This document shows, in pieces, positions 31,454 to 59,916 of a DNA stretch of 64,000 nt. Location of the stretch: the NCBI GenBank assembly GCA_026770705.1, contig JANJGN010000018.1:78306001-78370000 (forward strand), in the 5' to 3' direction. Positions within the stretch are counted from its first letter, which is position 1, and each line of letters begins with the position of its first letter. The position numbers and the translations under genes were made by a program. The DNA is from Isurus oxyrinchus. Taxonomy: Eukaryota. Under the pieces are notes generated by a model that saw only the letters and a program-made list of their open reading frames with translations, made no database searches and had not been told where the DNA came from.

Positions 31454-33317
31454 AATTACCTGGAAAAACTCAGCAGGTCTGGCAGCATCGGCGGGGAAGA
31501 AAAGTGTTGACGTTTCGAGTCCTCATGACCCTTCGACAGAACTTGAGTTCGAGTCCAAGAAAAAGTTGAAATATAAGCTGGTTTAAGGTGTGTGTGTGGG
31601 GGGCGGAGAGATAGAGAGAGAGAGAGGTGGTTGTATGGACAAACAAGCTCGAAACGTCAACTCTTTTCTTCTCCGCCGATGCTGCCAGACCTGCTGAGTT
31701 TTTCCAGGTAATTCTGTTTTTGTTTTGGATTTCCAGCATCCGCAGTTTTTTTGTTTTATCTCAGTGATAGAAGCAGATCATCAAAAGATGTCAACAACAA
31801 TGGTACAATAGAACACATAGGTGTTAAAGTTAAAGTTGGTGATATTATCTAAACGAATGTGCTAATTAAGAATGGATGGTAGGGCGCTCAAGGTATAGCT
31901 CTAATGGGGGTGGGGAGAGCATAAAAGATTTTAAAATATTTAAAAATAATGGAAATAGGTGGGAAAAGAAAAATCTATATAATTTATTGGAAAAAAAAGG
32001 GGGAAACAGAAATGGGGTGGGGATGGGGGAGGGAGCTCACGACCTAAAGTTGTTGAATTCAATATTCAGTCCAGAAGGCTGTAAGGTGCCTAGTCGGAAG
32101 ATGAGGTGTTGTTCCTCCAGTTTGCATTGGGCTTCACTGGAACAATGCAGCAAGCCAAGGACAGACATGTGGGCAAGAGAGCAGGGTGGAGTGTTAAAAT
32201 GGCAAGCGACAGGGAGGTTTGGGTCATTCTTGCGGACAGACCGCAGGTGTTCTGCAAAGCGGTCGCCCAGTTTACGTTTGAACCAAACACATCTTCCCTT
32301 CACCCCCCTTATCGGCATTCCGTAGGTATCGCTCCCTCCGGGACACCCTGGTCCACTCCTCCATCACCCCCTACTCCTCAACCCCCTCCTATGGCACCAC
32401 CCCATGCCCACGCAAAAGATGTAACACCTGCCCCTTCATTTCCTCTCTCCTCACCATCCAAGGGCCCAAACACTCCTTTCAAGTGAAGCAGCATTTCACT
32501 TGCATTTCCCCCAACTTAGTCTACTGCATTCGTTGCTCCCAATGTGGTCTCCTCTACATTGGAGAGACCAAACGTAAACTGGGTGACCGCTTTGCAGAAC
32601 ACCTGCGGTCTGTCCGCAAGAATGACCCAAACCTCCCTGTCGCTTGCCATTTTAACACTCCACCCTGCTCTCCTGCCCACATGTCTTGCTGCATTGTTCC
32701 AGTGAAGCCCAACGCAAACTGGAGGAACATCTTATCTTCCGACTAGGCACCTTACAGCCTTCCGGACTGAATATTGAATTCAACAACTTTAGGTCGTGAG
32801 CTCCCTCCCCCATCCCCACCCCATTTCTGTTTCCCCCTTTTTTTTTCCAATAAATTATATAGATTTTTCTTTTCCCACCTATTTCCATTATTTTTAAATA
32901 TTTTAAAATCTTTTATGCTCTCCCCACCCCCATTAGAGCTATACCTTGAGTGCCCTACCATCCATTCTTAATTAGCACATTCGTTTAGATAATATCACCA
33001 ACTTTAACTTTAACACCTATGTGTTCTATTGTACCATTGTTGTTGACATCTTTTGATGATCTGCTTCTATCACTGCTTGTTTGTCCATACAACCACCTCT
33101 CTCTCTCTCTATCTCTCCGCCCCCCACACACACACCTTAAACCAGCTTATATTTCAACTTTTTCTTGGACTCGAACTCAAGTTCTGTCGAAGGGTCATGA
33201 GGACTCGAAACGTCAACTCTTTTCTTCCCCGCCGATGCTGCCAGACCTGCTGAGTTTTTCCAGGTAATTCTGTTTTTGTTTTGGATTTCCAGCATCCGCA
33301 GTTTTTTTGTTTTGTTT
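31454..33317. mobile_element. Penelope-like element: 3' part (+, 32281-33317) with long inverted copy (31454-32280)
   Basis: GIY-YIG endonuclease NLVYCIRCSQCGLLYIGETKRKLGDRFAEH...LGTLQPSGLN on both strands. 13-bp TSD taattttgtttgg (31441-31453, 33318-33330). Confidence 0.93.
33180..33218 (+). ncRNA. Minimal type I hammerhead ribozyme motif (variant core CUGUCGA) in Penelope terminus
   Basis: AGUU-CUGUCGA-A-GGGUC-augag-GACUC-GAAA-CG-UC-AACU. Stem I AGUU/AACU, stem II GGGUC/GACUC, palindromic ACGU mini stem III, GUC cleavage triplet. Confidence 0.75.
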
Positions 33318-40273: not shown

Positions 40274-41790
40274 TAAAAACAAAAAAACTGCAAATGCTGG
40301 AAATCCAAAACAAAAACAGAATTACCTGGAAAAACTCAGCAGGTCTGGCAGCATCGGCGGAGAAGAAAAGAGTTGACGTTTCGAGTCTTCATGACCCTTC
40401 GACAGAACTTGAGTTCGAATCCAAGAAAGAGTTGAAATATAAGCTGGTTTAAGGTGTGTGTGTGGGGGGCGGAGAGAGAGAGAGAGAGACAGAGGTGCTT
40501 GTGTAGACAAACAAGCAGTGATAGAAGCAGATCATCAAAAGATGTCAGCGACAATGGTACAATAGAACACATAGGTGTTAAAGTTAAAGTTGGTGATATT
40601 ATCTAAACGAATGTGCTAATTAAGAATGGATGGAAGGGCACTCAAGGTATAGCTCTAGTGGGGTTGTTTTTTTTATATAATGGAAATAGGTGGGAAAAGG
40701 ATAATCTTTATAATTTATTGGAAAAAAAAGGAAGGGGGAAACAGAAAGGGGGTGGGGATGGGGGAGGGAGCTCACGACCTAAAGTTGTTGAATTCAATAT
40801 TCAGTCCGGAAGGCTGTAAGGTGCCTAGTCGGAAGATGAGGTGTTGTTCCTCCAGTTTGCGTTGGGCTTCACTGGAACAATGCAGCAAGCCAAGGACAGA
40901 CATGTGGGCAAGAGAGCAGGGTGGAGTGTTAAAATGGCAAGCGACAGGGAGGTTTGGGTCATTCTTGCGGACAGACCGCAGGTGTTCTGCAAAGCGGTCG
41001 CCCAGTTTATGTTTGGTCTCTCCAATGTAGAGGAGACCACATTGGGAGCAACGAATGTAGTAGACTAAGTTGGGGGAAATGCAAGTGAAATGCTGCTTCA
41101 CTTGAAAGGAGTGTTTGGGCCCTTGGATGGTGAGGAGAGAGGAAGTGAAGGGGCAGGTGTTACATCTTTTGCGTGGGCATGGGGTGGTGCCATAGGAGGC
41201 GTTTGAGGAGTAGGGGGTTATGGAGGAGTGGACCAGGGTGTCCCAGAGGGAGCGAACCCTACGGAATGCCGATAAGGGGGGTGAAGGGAAGATGTGTTTG
41301 GTGGTGGTATCATGCTGGAGTTGGCGGAAATGGCGGAGGATGATCCTTTGAATGCGGAGGCTGGTGGGGTGATAAGTGAGGACAAGGGACCCTATCATGT
41401 TTCTGGGAGGGAGGAGAAGGCGTGAGGGCGGATGCGCGGGAGATGGTCCGGACACGGTTGAGGGCCCTGTCAACGACCGTGGTTGGAAAACCTCGGTTAA
41501 GGAAGAAGGAGGACATGTCAGAGGAACTGTTTTTGAAGGTAGCATCATCGGAACAGATGTGACGGAGGCGAAGGAACTGAGAGAATGAGATGGAGTCCTT
41601 ACAGGAAGCGGGGTGTGAGGAACTGTAGTCGAGGTAGCTGTGGGAGTCGGTGGGTTTGTAATGGATATTGGTGGACAGTCTATCGCCAGAGATTGAGACA
41701 GAGAGGTCAAGGAAGGGAAGGGAAGTGTCAGAGATGGACCACGTGAAAATGATGGAGGGGTGGAGATTGGAAGCAAAATTAATAAATTTC
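40274..41790 (-). mobile_element. Young Penelope-like retroelement, 5'-truncated (RT C-terminus + GIY-YIG + pLTR)
   Basis: ORFs 41310..41792 (FINFASNLHPSIIFT..LPFLDL..YKPTDSHSYL) and 40772..41776 (LVLTYHP..YIGETKHKLGDRFAEH) join with one frameshift. Inserted in the Harbinger Myb exon. Confidence 0.93.
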
Positions 41791-53460: not shown

Positions 53461-54805
53461 CTACCTATCTGGTCATTTAGCACATACCTGTTAGTCGGCA
53501 ATTTGCACACAGCAAGGTCCCACAATGTTTTGCTATATTACCAATAGCAGCTACACTTCAAAAATACGTCATTAGTTCTGATACACTGATGCCCTGAGAT
53601 TATGAAAAGAGCAATATAAATGTCAATTCTTTTTTACTTTTTATGATTATAAACAATTGCAATGTTGGCCTTTAAATCAACTACACATTTCTGCATCCCA
53701 TTCAGCTTCACTCACCAATAGATTATTAATCAAATGCAAAATGGAGTCAATGGTGTATTATATTTTAATACGCAATCATAGATACAGCTGTAGAAATTGT
53801 AAGCAAAACATAGATTACCTGAATGACCATGCAAGACAAAATTTCCTGATTTTATGCTGCCAGTACAGATGCACATGCATATCTCATAAGTTTCTACACA
53901 TTAACTGTAGTCCACTCAGTTAAACTTAAGTTTAATGGCTGGAATATTTTGTATATTTTCCCCAAATACATTCCATGTGAGGGGTAGGAAGTACAAGCGG
54001 GGGGGCGGGGCGGAAACTAACCTAACAACTGAATAACTAGTTTTTATTTAAAATTTTGATATTTCTGTTAATGGATATTTACTGTTAGTTTTTTCTCTTC
54101 AGAAGTGTTTTTTTTAAGATAGGACATAATTCATTTTGTATGGCAGATTGTGCATGGTCTTTGATTAAGGAATGTGTTAAGGCCACACGACATTTTCACA
54201 TGCTGTACGTTATCTTTGTTGCATTCCGAATCAGCCAATCATGGAGCACTATTATCACTGAAGATGGAGAAGCCCTAGTGGTGAAGGTGGTTCTTTTCTG
54301 GCTGAGGATGAACACGTGACTGAGGCAAATATATATTTTTACAGCAATGGATAATTCAAATGCTTTTTAACCATATTGTATTTCCAAAAGAGCTTCCATT
54401 ACTTTACATGAACTGTGCTCTTTCCTATGTAGGAGATTATGCTTAGCAATTCCAAACAAAATAAAAGTACAATAATAAGTAAAATATTATAGTGATGAAT
54501 AACTTACAACAGCAGCAATGTAGTGGAAATATTCTGTATAATTATTACAAGTTAAACATTTTAAACTCTGACAAAGTCACTCACAATTAGTAAAGTAAAA
54601 ATTCAAAGAAGTTACATATTGGACTGTGCAATGCATTGGTGTACTATCTCTGTTTTTGCTCAACACATCTCTTCACAGCTTAATGAGGTAGTGTTCAAAG
54701 TGGCCACAGAGATAGGCCACAGCCCAGCTCCATGACAGCAATTCTCATTTGAGAAGACACAAAACAGAATCATAAAATAACTACCTTTTTTTAACTGAAG
54801 CCATT

Positions 54806-54981
54806 TTACTCTGCTGAAAAGGCATTTTGATATATAATCAGTGGAGCATGTCTAATAAAACTATAATTAGAATTTGTAAGTTGATTTAAATTTTGATTTG
54901 AGTTCTGACATGTTGAGGCAGTCTCTTCTTTTCTTGATACAGTGCCAACATTAACATAGAGCTGATTGACTTCAGGATTTG
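54806..54981 (-). CDS. IgSF receptor last coding exon, cytoplasmic tail
   Basis: ttttccttcattttag| then ANPEVNQLYVNVGTVSRKEETASTCQNSNQNLNQLTNSNYSFIRHAPLIIYQNAFSAE*. Confidence 0.8.
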
Positions 54982-57900
54982 CTAAAATGAAGGAAAAATT
55001 GTGTAAAAATACAATTCGTATGGTTTAGTTCATTCCATGATTATAAATATATCTAAGGAATATACAGTCACGGAGAAATCAGTATCATTCCCCTGATGAT
55101 GGAAAACAGGTACCAAACTGACTCAAAGTGAATTCTATCATTTTGACACTAGTGTGTGAAGTCTGTCTTCTGTTAGTGAAATCTAGCATTGATAGCAAGA
55201 TTGTCATTCAGTTTTAGTCATTTGAGAAACTACTCAGCTAAGGCATCAAGAAGTTTTTCAAACTCGGTTTTAAATTTGTAGCTGCCTGTCAGTTAATTGC
55301 TTTAAGAAGAGTGATCCAATTATCTGTTTCATTGTACTGAAGACTGTAATGTAAGAAGTCACAAATTAATACTCTACAGTGTATGATTGATTGAATACTG
55401 CTAAGTCACATAAGTCATCTAGTGCTGCTTAACAATGTGTGGATGAAGGATGTGGTCTCACAGAGCTCAATACTTTGGAGGTTTGTGAAGTTATGGATGC
55501 CACATAAGTCACATAAGGCAATATTGAGACAGAATGTCAAAAGCTTCATCGAAGATGATTTTAAGGATTATCTTAAAGGAGGAAAGAGAGGCAGAGAGGT
55601 TAGGGAGGAAATCCCAGAGCTTGAGGTTGAGGCAGCTGAAGGCACGGCTACCTATGGTGTTTTAAAGTATCAGTTTTATGAATTACATGCTCATCAAGGT
55701 GAAGCCAATTTCAGTCTGAAGCACACCTTTGTTATATTACAACATAGGACATGCAGAATAAATCAGGCTGTACACTGCTTATGTTTCAACCCAATGTCAC
55801 ATGAGTACACCCATTGCCACATTGTGACATATTCCAATTCCTACAACAGGCATCCTGTCTACTCTCTGAATGCCAAAGGGCAGTTTCATTATGTGGGACC
55901 ACGTCCAGTTGGAACTGGGTTAAGAATAGTGGTTTAAGGCGTGAAAAGACAGCATTCTAACCCACTACACCCTGTTATCGGTTATACAAGTAAGTTATAC
56001 TGAAAGCTGGCAGTGTAAATGCATCAACTCCATTCAGCCCCGACATGGATCCACCTACTGGAACTTTGATTAAGTTGTGCAAATAGGAATACTGACCCTA
56101 TTTCCACAAATGTCAATTAAAAGCTATTTACAAGCCTCAACCTTGATTTAAAAAGCAAAAATTCTAATAATCTGGATCTTACCTTTTCTTGAACGCTTTA
56201 ATAGTAAATAGACAATGGCAGATACTAGAATTATGCACAGAGAAGAAAGCACCACCCAAATATATACTCTACCTGTAATAAAAAAATAACAAGAAGGCCT
56301 TTGAATTAATGGCTTCATCAATATCAGGTCATCTGATAACCAATATAATAAATTTCTTCCAAAATCAAATACAGTTTACTGTTTTTGTTTATACTGATCC
56401 AGTTAAGAACATGGAAATAACTGTTTGAGAAGCATAAACTGAGATTAAAATTAACAAGCATCAAACAAGATTTCAGAATATACTCTCAGGAAAAACAGCT
56501 AACGCAATGTCAATTAACTCCTGGATAACAAAAGGCTGGATGAAATTTGGTTGGGAACAGGGCTGAGGTTTATGATCGTTGATAAAGTGCTGCCCTTAAG
56601 TCAGTGGGAATTTGAAGCGGGAGTGTCAGGACCAAACCTACGGTAATTCGCAGTTTATGGGGAGAGAAGAAAGCGGTCAGTGATTTGCAAAGAGTGTGAT
56701 TCGAGGCAGGTGAAGCCTTGTAGGACCTGGAAAACCTTTTCACTCTTCAGACTATTTTCTTATTCTTGGGACAGGGTGCCGCACTGACTTCCAGGTTAAG
56801 GTGACAATGGAGTCCTATTATTACAATTAGACCTCAACTTGTGAAAAGTGTGTTCACCCATGTCATGGAATGGGGAGTTCTCCCACTCCCTAATGGGCGT
56901 GGGGTGTTAACATTCCCATATTAGTTGCTTAATTTTTTTTTGGTTGTGGATAAACTTAATTCATTAAAAAAAACCTAACTTGTGGATTTAGCCAAGCCAG
57001 TCAGAGGGAATTGGAGGGCATAGTGGGCAGATTGCTTAGTGTCAATAGTTTGGTAAAAAGGTGTTTGTTATTTCTGTGCTTTTCGTGTTCATGGCCACTA
57101 AAACAAGAAGTTTGAAATATAGGAGATACCAGGTCTCTTATCGAATGTGATTTTTTTTTCTAAATACAAATAAAAAGTGGGAGGATAGAATGAACCCTAA
57201 TAGTACCGAGACTATTTCATTTTTTGGTTAAAAGGAAACAGTGATTTTAAAGTGAAGAAAGGGAAGAAACTGTACAACTGAAATACCTTCATGTCGTTCA
57301 TCAATTGATATGGTTAGTTTCCTAATGATTTGCAACATTGAGTGATTCACATGACATGCGTACACATCCCCGTTCTCCCAGTGAGAGAGGTCAACGTAAC
57401 TTGTTCTGGAATTGCTGTTGTTTGAGGCAGTAGTAATACTGGAATTGATCCACACTGAGCCTTCTTTTCCTTCTTTACTCCACCTCAGTTGGATGTCACC
57501 AGGAAGGAAATTCTCTGCTCTGCAAACCAGTTGTACGCAACAACCGTTTTCAGGTCGGTCAAGGAATTTAACTTCGACCACTGGAGGAGCTTGGGGAAGA
57601 AAATGTGACATGTTTTATTGAATTTTGAAAAAAACAACTTTATATTTTACTTTATTTTCCATCGGGAAAAATCCCATTGTGCATATAGTGATGCTGTTCT
57701 CTCAACTAAATGCTGTACATTGATTCTATAATACACAGGCAAACATATTGGTTATGATGTAGATAATAATCTCAAGAAATTTCTTTGCAAAAATATTTAC
57801 AATTCAAATTAGCTTGAGACCAGAAAAGACAATTGAAATACAAAAGATTTATGTTATCAAGGCTATAATTCATACCTTCTACTGTGAGGCGCGTTTTGTT

Positions 57901-59440
57901 TCCTTGTATTTCTTTTGTAGGTGGTGGTATAGGGAATTCAATTTTACAGTAATAAAAATCTGTATCATTCAACTGGAGATCTTGGATGGTAAAGTGAGTG
58001 ACCATAGCATTGAGCTCCAAAGTAATGTCCACTCGACGATCACACTTAGGACTCCGCTCCAATGTTTGATTGATATAACGTATTCTACATACAGGATTTT
58101 TCCACATACTCCTCCACCAGGAAACAGACATCATTTCTACTTCAGTTCGATTGTACAAGTAGAAGTAAGAGATTTTAGCACTTTGTCCCTTCCCTGCTTT
58201 AAGAACAGCTGGAGTTTGGAAAACTTGGTCTTCACCATGTGTCAAAACTGTTCCCATGAAAAATGAAAATAAATTAACATTGTTGTGAAAAGCTATTTGA
58301 ACATCTATCCGTGAATCTACCTATTTATTTAAAGATGTGGCTCTCATATTAAGATTGAAATGATCATTCTTATTGAGCAAGACATGACACGGGTTCTGCA
58401 GACCAGTATAAGTTGTGTTTATTTTGCTTTTGACCAAAATTTAATTCTAAAAAAGAATGCAATCAAGGTATGAAATCAAGGTAAACAGTACAATCAATTA
58501 AAAGTCTGTCAAGAAAAGCATGTCGCTGTATACTTTAGTTATAGGGAGAGGTTTGTAATATTTGTTTGCAAGACCAAGAGGTTTGTAATATCAATGTGCT
58601 TTGTCACAAGAGGTTTATGATATCGTTGTGTGATTCAATGAGAGTTTAGCGTCTTATCAATTAAATCAGGTAGATTGCGAATGCAGTATTAAGATTGCTG
58701 TCAGCAAAACAACTGGTTAGGATATTTTTCATGTTCCAACATTAGTCAATGCAAAGAACCTTCATGGTCCTGCTCAAATGTCAACAACAATGTGTCTAGT
58801 TGGTCAGTCTATGCCTCTTACTGTCCTAGATGCCCTAGTCACCGATAAAACAAAATTGTAATGATGCACTGCTTATACAGGAGAGTTTAAATAAGTTTAA
58901 TACATGCAAAAGAATGGAAGTGCCTGCTTCAAAAGTTTTGGTCACTCACTACCATGCTAACTGTGGAGATACGTTCACAATGCAGCAAACGTGGCAAGGT
59001 TTAGAACAAAAGTTTTTAAATTTTAATTGATGTTTGGTTAGAATTAGATGAAAAATGTCATTGGCTGTAAGAAATAAGATTGATAAAATTAATACCATTG
59101 CATACTGGTCACAGCTCAGCACATTTGTTTCATGAAACATATACATTCATGACAGATTCCTTTTCAAATAAATTAGATTTCTATGAAGACAATACAGGCT
59201 AATACCTGGTGTTTTCCTGTATGATATTTAAGCCAAGTGAATACTCAACCAAAAAAAAAGAAAATCTGCAAGCCAGGAATGTCAGTGACAGAAAAATGTC
59301 AATCAGTACCAGCAGGGTTTTTAAAAGGTTACAAGACTGTTCTCTCAACTTTGCTAACATTATTAGATTAGAAAAGCATCCTTACCTAAAGTAACAATGA
59401 GGAGAATCCACTTGGTGAAACAATTAGTGAGTGAAGACAT
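54806..59440 (-). CDS. IgSF receptor, leader-V(J)-C1-TM-cytoplasmic tail, 331 aa predicted (join 59440-59386, 58247-57876, 57589-57287, 56272-56183, 54981-54806)
   Basis: All introns GT-AG and phase 1; the joined frame is open (55+372+303+90+176=996 nt). An extra small cytoplasmic exon (e.g. ~55182-55114) cannot be excluded. Confidence 0.88.
56183..56272 (-). CDS. IgSF receptor exon 4, transmembrane
   Basis: GRVYIWVVLSSLCIILVSAIVYLLLKRSRK; ttacag| and |gtaaga. Not in the ORF track. Confidence 0.9.
57287..57589 (-). CDS. IgSF receptor exon 3, C1-set domain
   Basis: APPVVEV..VQLVCRAENFLPGDIQLRWSKEG..WENGDVYACHVNHSML; aag| and |gtattt. Confidence 0.93.
57876..58247 (-). CDS. IgSF receptor exon 2, V-set domain with germline J-like G strand
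   Basis: VFQTP..GQSAKISY..VSWWR..TIQDLQLNDTDFYYCKIEFPIPPPTKEIQGNKTRLTVE; cag| and |gtatga. Confidence 0.93.
59386..59440 (-). CDS. IgSF receptor exon 1, signal peptide
   Basis: gcaaaATG; MSSLTNCFTKWILLIVTL+G|gtaagg. Confidence 0.8.
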
Positions 59441-59916
59441 TTTGCCCAGCGCCAGTTGCATTGACATGTTCTGTTCCGGAACAGGGATGGCAACAGCTCT
59501 GCTACAGTGGGTGGAGAGCATGCAACTGTGTTCTCCTAAAAAGGTGAAGCAGTCCGTTGTGGGTTCTTCTGACAACAGTCTTCCTGTCTGAAATTTGTGG
59601 TGCTTAGTCTTTGACTTTACTTGTATACCAACAATTAAATGACTTATTAAAAAATAATTAGTGCAAAGATGTCTGCCTGTGACAATTCATTACATGTTTC
59701 TGCTAAGACCTGGCAAATCTTTTGCATCTTTCATTAGCTTTTCTGGCACCTCATTTCTACAACAAAAACGATTTCATGTTATTACCTCAGAATAATTGGG
59801 TGTTGAGGTGTTAATTCCTTCCCTTTATTCACGTTTCACAAATTTATAATTAAACTGGATTAGGGCATTTTTTTTGGAGAGTTTCATGCATACTTATTAC
59901 TGTGATGAATATATCA

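Follow-up and report, generated by a model that had tools for sequence, protein, structure and literature searches.

The 64,000-nucleotide stretch of Isurus oxyrinchus DNA analyzed here (the window: contig JANJGN010000018.1 of assembly GCA_026770705.1, forward-strand positions 78,306,001 to 78,370,000, with coordinates counted from its first base) contains a minus-strand gene, read from the sequence at 54806-59440, whose five coding exons encode a leader, a V domain, a C1 domain, a transmembrane segment and a cytoplasmic tail. All introns are of the GT..AG type and all junctions are in phase 1, as is usual in genes of the immunoglobulin (Ig) superfamily, and the 996-nt coding sequence yields a predicted type I protein of 331 amino acids (aa). 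The five in-frame exons proposed in an earlier sequence-only reading of this DNA are thus present, and the gene encodes an intact and conserved type I membrane protein with a V-C1 ectodomain, for which spliced, exon-only contigs were observed at two junctions. The ortholog is LOC121290359 of the great white shark (isoform X1, P0049; 331 aa, same exon joins). Searches by tblastn with the LOC121290359 protein and with family proteins revealed no Ig exon beyond these five in the whole 64 kb; the remaining content of the window consists of transposon-derived open reading frames (ORFs), with no other gene.

All five exons lie on the minus strand. The coding part of exon 1 (from the ATG at 59440 to 59386) specifies the leader MSSLTNCFTKWILLIVTL plus one base of the next codon, ahead of the donor G|gtaagg, and aligns in tblastn with residues 1-25 of LOC121290359. 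Exon 1 with its 5' untranslated region (UTR) extends upstream to at least 59595, as RNA-like contigs cover 59420-59595, and the start codon is uncertain because further in-frame ATGs are found upstream of 59440 within the same exon. The V exon (57876-58247; acceptor aacag|TT, donor GAA G|gtatga, both phase 1) combines a V-set domain with a J-like G strand, and its F strand, FG loop and G strand (YYCKIEFPIPPPTKEIQGNKTRLTVE, 57877-57954) form the CD28/CTLA-4-like ligand-loop region, with a PIPPP loop at 57919-57933 within the FG loop. It is followed by the C1 exon (57287-57589; LVCRAENFLPGDIQLRW ... YACHVNH, both junctions phase 1), the transmembrane exon (56183-56272), read from its translation as (G)RVYIWVVLSSLCIILVSAIVYLLLKRSRK, and the tail exon (54806-54981), which closes with the stop codon TAA at 54808-54806; the 3' UTR reaches below 54600.

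The V exon ends in ...DTDFYYCKIEFPIPPPTKEIQGNKTRLTVE, which abuts the splice donor directly (its 3' end is also read as ...LQLNDTDFYYCKIEFPIPPPTKEIQGNKTRLTVE, with the donor site immediately after). Since the exon ends at a donor right after the J-like strand, this strand is germline-joined and no recombination signal sequence (RSS) splits the exon, just as the sequence-only reading had held in placing V and the J-like strand together without an RSS. A heptamer-like CACAGTA at the end of the V exon was considered as a potential RSS and rejected: it corresponds to the L-T-V codons before the donor and does not lie between V and J. The J-like strand itself, EIQGNKTRLTV, is without the F/W-G-x-G motif.

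Domain assignments were obtained from Pfam and from a phmmer search of 177,635 distinct PDB sequences. The V exon is recognized as V-set (1.6e-10), with CD28 (1.2e-4) and CTLA-4 (~1e-3) as its top matches among solved structures. A proline motif occurs in the FG loop at a fixed spacing after YxC (YYC-KIEFPI-PPP in the window), and its IPPP core is invariant in our family alignment (A1). The C exon scores as C1-set (5.1e-12) and displays the hallmarks LVCxxxxFxPxxIxxxW and YxCxVxH; its PDB matches are Ig heavy- and light-chain constant domains, domain 3 of SIRP-gamma (6.5e-11) and shark UrIg2, and it gives no match to the Pfam CD80-like C2-set model at E<=1. The antigen-receptor-type C1 domain claimed beforehand is thereby corroborated: judged by these comparisons, the second domain is a true C1-set of the Ig/UrIg/SIRP type, a class within which the searches cannot separate Ig/UrIg from SIRP-type C1. 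A shorter isoform X2 (293 aa) of great white LOC121290359, in which ...NSNSGTS is joined straight to RVYIW, is compatible with the use of a cryptic donor (A|GTTACG) within the C1 exon, conserved in the window at ~57397-57402; this form would be without the F and G strands of C1.

When the V exon was compared exhaustively by HMMER with 1.84 billion representatives, only 34 matches below 1e-3 were obtained. Shark, ray and chimaera V-C1 proteins rank highest, and among the rest are V-C1 proteins from sturgeons, CD28/CTLA4-like proteins with a single V domain, and multi-V models, several of which outrank the single-V proteins through summed domain scores only. With the full-length LOC121290359 protein as a stand-in for the whole window protein and the window exons searched singly, per-exon identity to this ortholog amounts to 116/123 in V (7 differences), 98/100 in C1 (2 differences), 27/29 in the transmembrane exon and 57/57 in the tail (no difference), values that point to a very close lamnid relative of the great white shark as the source of the window. 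The same type of gene, designated here as type A, is also found in Chiloscyllium, Rhincodon, Stegostoma, Heterodontus, Scyliorhinus and Heptranchias, with a partial model in the chimaera Callorhinchus. A paralogous type B (...SIEIPPP...GxGTxLxVEA, a C1 domain and a tail ending in IYxxLGQ) occurs in sharks, rays and Callorhinchus, where a cDNA-derived record (NP_001279395 / AFK11223) supports it. The two types differ in the G strand, which reads GNKT in type A (GDTT in Heterodontus) and GxGT in type B. Their models are located on contigs of equal size, and therefore on the same chromosome, in Carcharodon, Stegostoma and Heptranchias. The V(IPPP)-C1 layout recurs in proteins of sturgeons (Acipenser, Huso), with type B as their nearest non-sturgeon relatives; database homolog searches turned up type A in neither rays nor sturgeons, and a search with the family alignment as query returned only already known members. 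The wider family, which reaches sturgeons, is thus not limited to cartilaginous fish. In a maximum-likelihood (ML) tree of V domains, type A forms a clade with 99/98 support that includes the Callorhinchus sequence and, therefore, predates the split between chimaeras and the shark/ray lineage. The stem leading to this clade is long, and the association of the clade with sturgeon sequences is flagged for possible long-branch effects.

The description of this receptor as uncharacterized, made from the window alone, needs to be qualified. Full-text and identifier searches including supplements found no publication on the V-C1 family, although most subscription journals lie outside their coverage and absence is thus unproven. 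On the other hand, the gene is already present in public annotation, with models in at least nine chondrichthyans under automatic and mutually contradictory names (uncharacterized, kappa/lambda light chain-like, SIRP-like, DM beta-like, tapasin-related, class I antigen-like).

Expression was approached via contigs of four coded sequencing runs (X2, X3, X9 and X13) mapped to 54600-59600. X9 and X13 are DNA, with exons and introns evenly covered and ~2% difference from the window (75 differences in 3754 bases). X2 and X3 cover the exons plus one high-copy repeat only, an RNA-like pattern (their 'RNA?' label is a guess), and the X2 contigs match the window without a single difference. The contigs in perfect agreement with the window bear the label organism B and the DNA with ~2% difference the label organism A; the window probably stems from organism B, a close relative of the great white shark. 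The transmembrane-tail joint (54981->56183) is seen in X2 and the C1-transmembrane joint (56272->57287) in X3, both exactly at the predicted junctions. Individual RNA-like contigs cover the V exon (57907-58249 and 57912-58159) and the C1 exon (57286-57578, joined to the transmembrane exon), and a further contig covers 54600-54981 over the tail exon. The V stretch covered by X3 (343 nt) shows 6 base differences, and 5 amino-acid differences from the LOC121290359 protein fall there; if X3 carries the LOC121290359 allele, most substitutions in this stretch would be replacements, in numbers too small for a test. A pseudogene reading was considered and rejected in view of the open exons, the canonical splice sites, the orthologs conserved across chondrichthyans and the exon-only contigs covering the gene.

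The high-copy repeat lies in the transmembrane-tail intron (55435-55770), where summed depth in X9 reaches ~19,000 vs. ~24 in the flanks; many loose contig ends cluster at 55557-55601, and the repeat is present in the RNA-like runs too. It is overlapped by a 171-aa ORF (55422-55937, plus strand), which is probably transposon-derived. Elsewhere in the window, a repeat-like minus-strand stretch at 33940-34168 matches the N-terminal ~80 residues of type B model XP_041066805 of the great white shark at 44-50% identity, and, as far as this match goes, this public model probably begins with transposon sequence included in error. Two minus-strand copies of one transposon ORF, ending ...GDRFAEHLRSVRKNDPNLPVACHFNTPPCSLAHMSVLGLLHCSSEAQ.KLEEQHLIFRLGTLQPSGLNIEFNNFRS, occupy 40772-41776 and 32037-32318 and may represent the endonuclease ends of Penelope-like elements; the first reading of the window had pointed out a Penelope hammerhead at 33180-33218.

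Taken as a whole, we consider it reasonably likely that this locus, as the ortholog of LOC121290359, represents type A of an old and unnamed family of type I receptors with a co-stimulatory or co-inhibitory function, as opposed to an antigen receptor. By analogy with CD28 and CTLA-4, the V domain would engage a B7-like ligand via its proline-containing FG loop, and the C1 domain might serve either as a rigid membrane-proximal spacer lifting V away from the membrane or as a pairing module. The membrane span is without a charged residue, and three tyrosine motifs are conserved in the tail of type A: YVNV (54947-54958; YVNV, YVNF or YANF across all aligned orthologs), SNYSFI (54854-54871), which aligns with the C-terminal IYxxLGQ of type B, and a second YxN motif, YQNA (54821-54832), which reads IYENTF in orthologs, giving the consensus IY(Q/E)N(A/T)F, and is missing in Heptranchias. 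The pattern of an immunoreceptor tyrosine-based inhibitory motif (ITIM) is S/I/V/L-x-Y-x-x-I/V/L, which SNYSFI fits. As motif matches, YVNV and YQNA would be of the Grb2-binding YxN type and SNYSFI would be ITIM-like. An uncharged membrane span combined with conserved tail tyrosines may thus provide for self-contained signaling, and such a tail would, in turn, point to a co-stimulatory or co-inhibitory leukocyte receptor and not to an antigen receptor.

The link to the CD28 family draws on several comparisons. The closest single-domain V matches are CD28/CTLA4-like receptors, resembling by motif CD28X (EYEDM tail) and CD28HL1 (EIPPP). A profile-profile comparison (hhalign) of 12 family members with a CD28-family alignment (five proteins in seven rows that include two isoform or near-identical duplicates) aligned the V domain over its full 118 columns with 99.4% probability and E 1.4e-21; as it lacked a non-CD28 V control, this result shows homology of the V domains and not exclusive kinship. 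The ML tree sets the V-C1 proteins apart from the five CD28-family rows at 92/80, its rows being limited to the V-C1 and CD28 families, with no outgroup outside the latter. The Pfam ICOS V-set cut-off is passed by one type B sequence only (28.7 vs. 28 bits).

Beyond the missing control and the missing outgroup, a number of observations weigh against the favored interpretation. The CD28/CTLA4-like V domain was rightly recognized from its motif and CD28 and CTLA-4 do lead the PDB matches, but statistical support is modest (E ~1e-4) and the alignment is confined to the F-G region ...LxxxDTDxYxCKIExxxPPP... (…DTDFYYCKIEFPIPPP…); the window V exon gives no match to the Pfam ICOS V-set model. At the position of the canonical B-strand cysteine of V (~58170-58180 in the window), all type A sequences carry Y, F or S, and the F-strand cysteine, kept elsewhere in type A, is a tyrosine in Scyliorhinus, leaving that sequence without both; with canonical cysteines missing, the fold or the binding mode of the domain may differ. 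An AlphaFold2 model of the LOC121290359 protein, built with a 12-row alignment, was poor (mean predicted local distance difference test score 57.7), and Foldseek on this model retrieved only generic Fab and T-cell receptor (TCR) V-C chains at low template-modeling scores, which were not used for domain classification. As to transcripts, the joining of V to C1 and to the transmembrane segment is confirmed for the C1-transmembrane and transmembrane-tail steps only, as no contig of X2 or X3 bridges the V-C1 junction; for this join we rely on the identical NCBI ortholog model LOC121290359 and on the cDNA-based record of the Callorhinchus paralog. A contig of X2 identical to the window (57488-57749) extends from C1 160 bases into the V-C1 intron, and could reflect unspliced RNA, DNA carry-over or intron retention.

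The same features can be arranged differently. If type A were one chain of a two-chain, antigen-receptor-like complex, pairing through C1 with type B in the manner of TCR alpha/beta or CH1/CL, its unusual cysteines would find a use: a Cys-Cys just before the C1 B strand is present in every type A and in no type B sequence, and, with this extra pair and without the B-strand cysteine of V, the type A ectodomain has an odd number of cysteines, for which an interchain bond is one possibility. Such an arrangement would also be in line with the general tendency of C1 domains to pair, with the location of both types on a single chromosome in several species and with the homodimeric state of UrIg2, whose V-C1 is the best solved match of the family profile. 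We nevertheless regard it as unlikely, as each of the two types has its own transmembrane segment and signaling tail, SIRP C1 domains do not pair, and type B or its nearest relatives persist in rays and sturgeons where no type A was found, so that type B does not need type A.

Two further alternatives would place the gene among other known classes. The tail motif SNYSFI, the prominence of SIRP-gamma domain 3 among the better C1 matches and the occurrence of 'SIRP-like' among the automatic names suggest a SIRP-like or paired inhibitory receptor, with the CD28 likeness reduced to convergence in one loop; indeed, SIRP and the window gene share a VJ-like V domain followed by C1 and an ITIM-like tail tyrosine. 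To this possibility we assign a low probability, since the CD28-profile likeness spans the whole V domain and not one loop, the 60 top-ranking PDB matches of the V exon include no SIRP V, and the V-C1-C1 layout of SIRP contrasts with one C1 exon here. A B7-type ligand (V-C1-transmembrane) displayed on antigen-presenting cells, instead of a CD28-type receptor, would have the same domain order and the same leader/V/C/transmembrane/tail exon plan, as B7 genes also encode a V and a C ectodomain on separate exons joined in phase 1, and relatives of type B give sub-threshold or secondary matches to the Pfam CD80-like and butyrophilin C domains. However, the window V domain appears nearest to CD28-type receptors and carries the PPP loop and a J-like G strand, the second domain is an Ig-type C1-set (C1-set scores lie far above the CD80-like C2-set model), and the tail has three conserved tyrosine motifs, which together render a ligand role highly improbable.

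With a co-stimulatory or co-inhibitory receptor as the favored interpretation, the V-C1 branch, if it is of CD28 type, would add a two-domain arm to a family in which all members are single-V (PMC11599192). The family would provide a concrete object for asking whether co-stimulatory and antigen receptors share a VJ-C1 ancestor, and it also raises the question of which B7-like ligands of sharks such a receptor binds. One may go further and suppose that V-C1 is the ancestral architecture of the CD28 group, its single-V members having arisen by loss of the C1 exon from a VJ-C1 stock shared with UrIg and Ig/TCR; we deem this rather unlikely, but, if true, co-stimulation would be connected in its beginnings with the lineage of antigen receptors. 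With regard to genome annotation, members of a single family are at present spread over names such as 'kappa light chain-like', 'SIRP-like', 'DM beta-like', 'tapasin-related' and 'class I antigen-like'.

Among known systems, the first comparison is with the CD28 family. Two cysteines conserved across the C' and D region of the V-C1 family have their equivalent in CD28 and CTLA-4, which carry such a pair (visible here in the teleost CD28 row), and CKIE is common to CD28 and the window gene. Both are type I transmembrane proteins with YxN tail motifs. The 2024 census of this family lists nine members (CD28, CTLA4, ICOS, CD28H, CD28HL1-3, CD28X and PD-1), each with a single V domain, and leaves the origin of the family open (Quiniou et al., PMC11599192). 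The YxC-x6-PPP-x5-G spacing of the window gene is the same as in CTLA-4 and CD28X, and its IPPP core is shared with CD28H-like members (PMC11599192). In contrast to the single-V members of the census (PMC11599192), the window gene has an extra membrane-proximal C1 domain on its own exon; it is also without the stalk cysteine, without YxxxxT in the transmembrane segment and, like all of type A, without the canonical B-strand cysteine. Its G strand has GNK vs. the GxG of the CD28 family, some described members of which are also without GxG.

The second comparison is with UrIg and UrIg2, non-rearranging shark V-C1-Cn genes (PMC12227049; PDB 9dmx). The UrIg2 V-C1-C2-C3 structure matches the family profile at 2e-52, with V and C1 in one stretch, most of the score coming from the C1 domains and the V alignment being weak. 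UrIg2 has ten Ig domains and an antigen-receptor-like V without the PPP loop, whereas the window gene has one C1 domain and a tyrosine-bearing tail. The earlier suggestion of an antigen-receptor-like VJ segment accordingly survives in part: the GNKT strand of the window gene departs from the UrIg-type consensus FGxGTxLxV, to which type B (GxGTxLxVEA) comes closer, and the B-strand cysteine is lost, but the C1-set domain that follows V in UrIg-type genes is present, with its FxP...W and YxCxVxH signatures, and in both UrIg2 and the window gene a germline-joined V exon leads into this C1-set domain.

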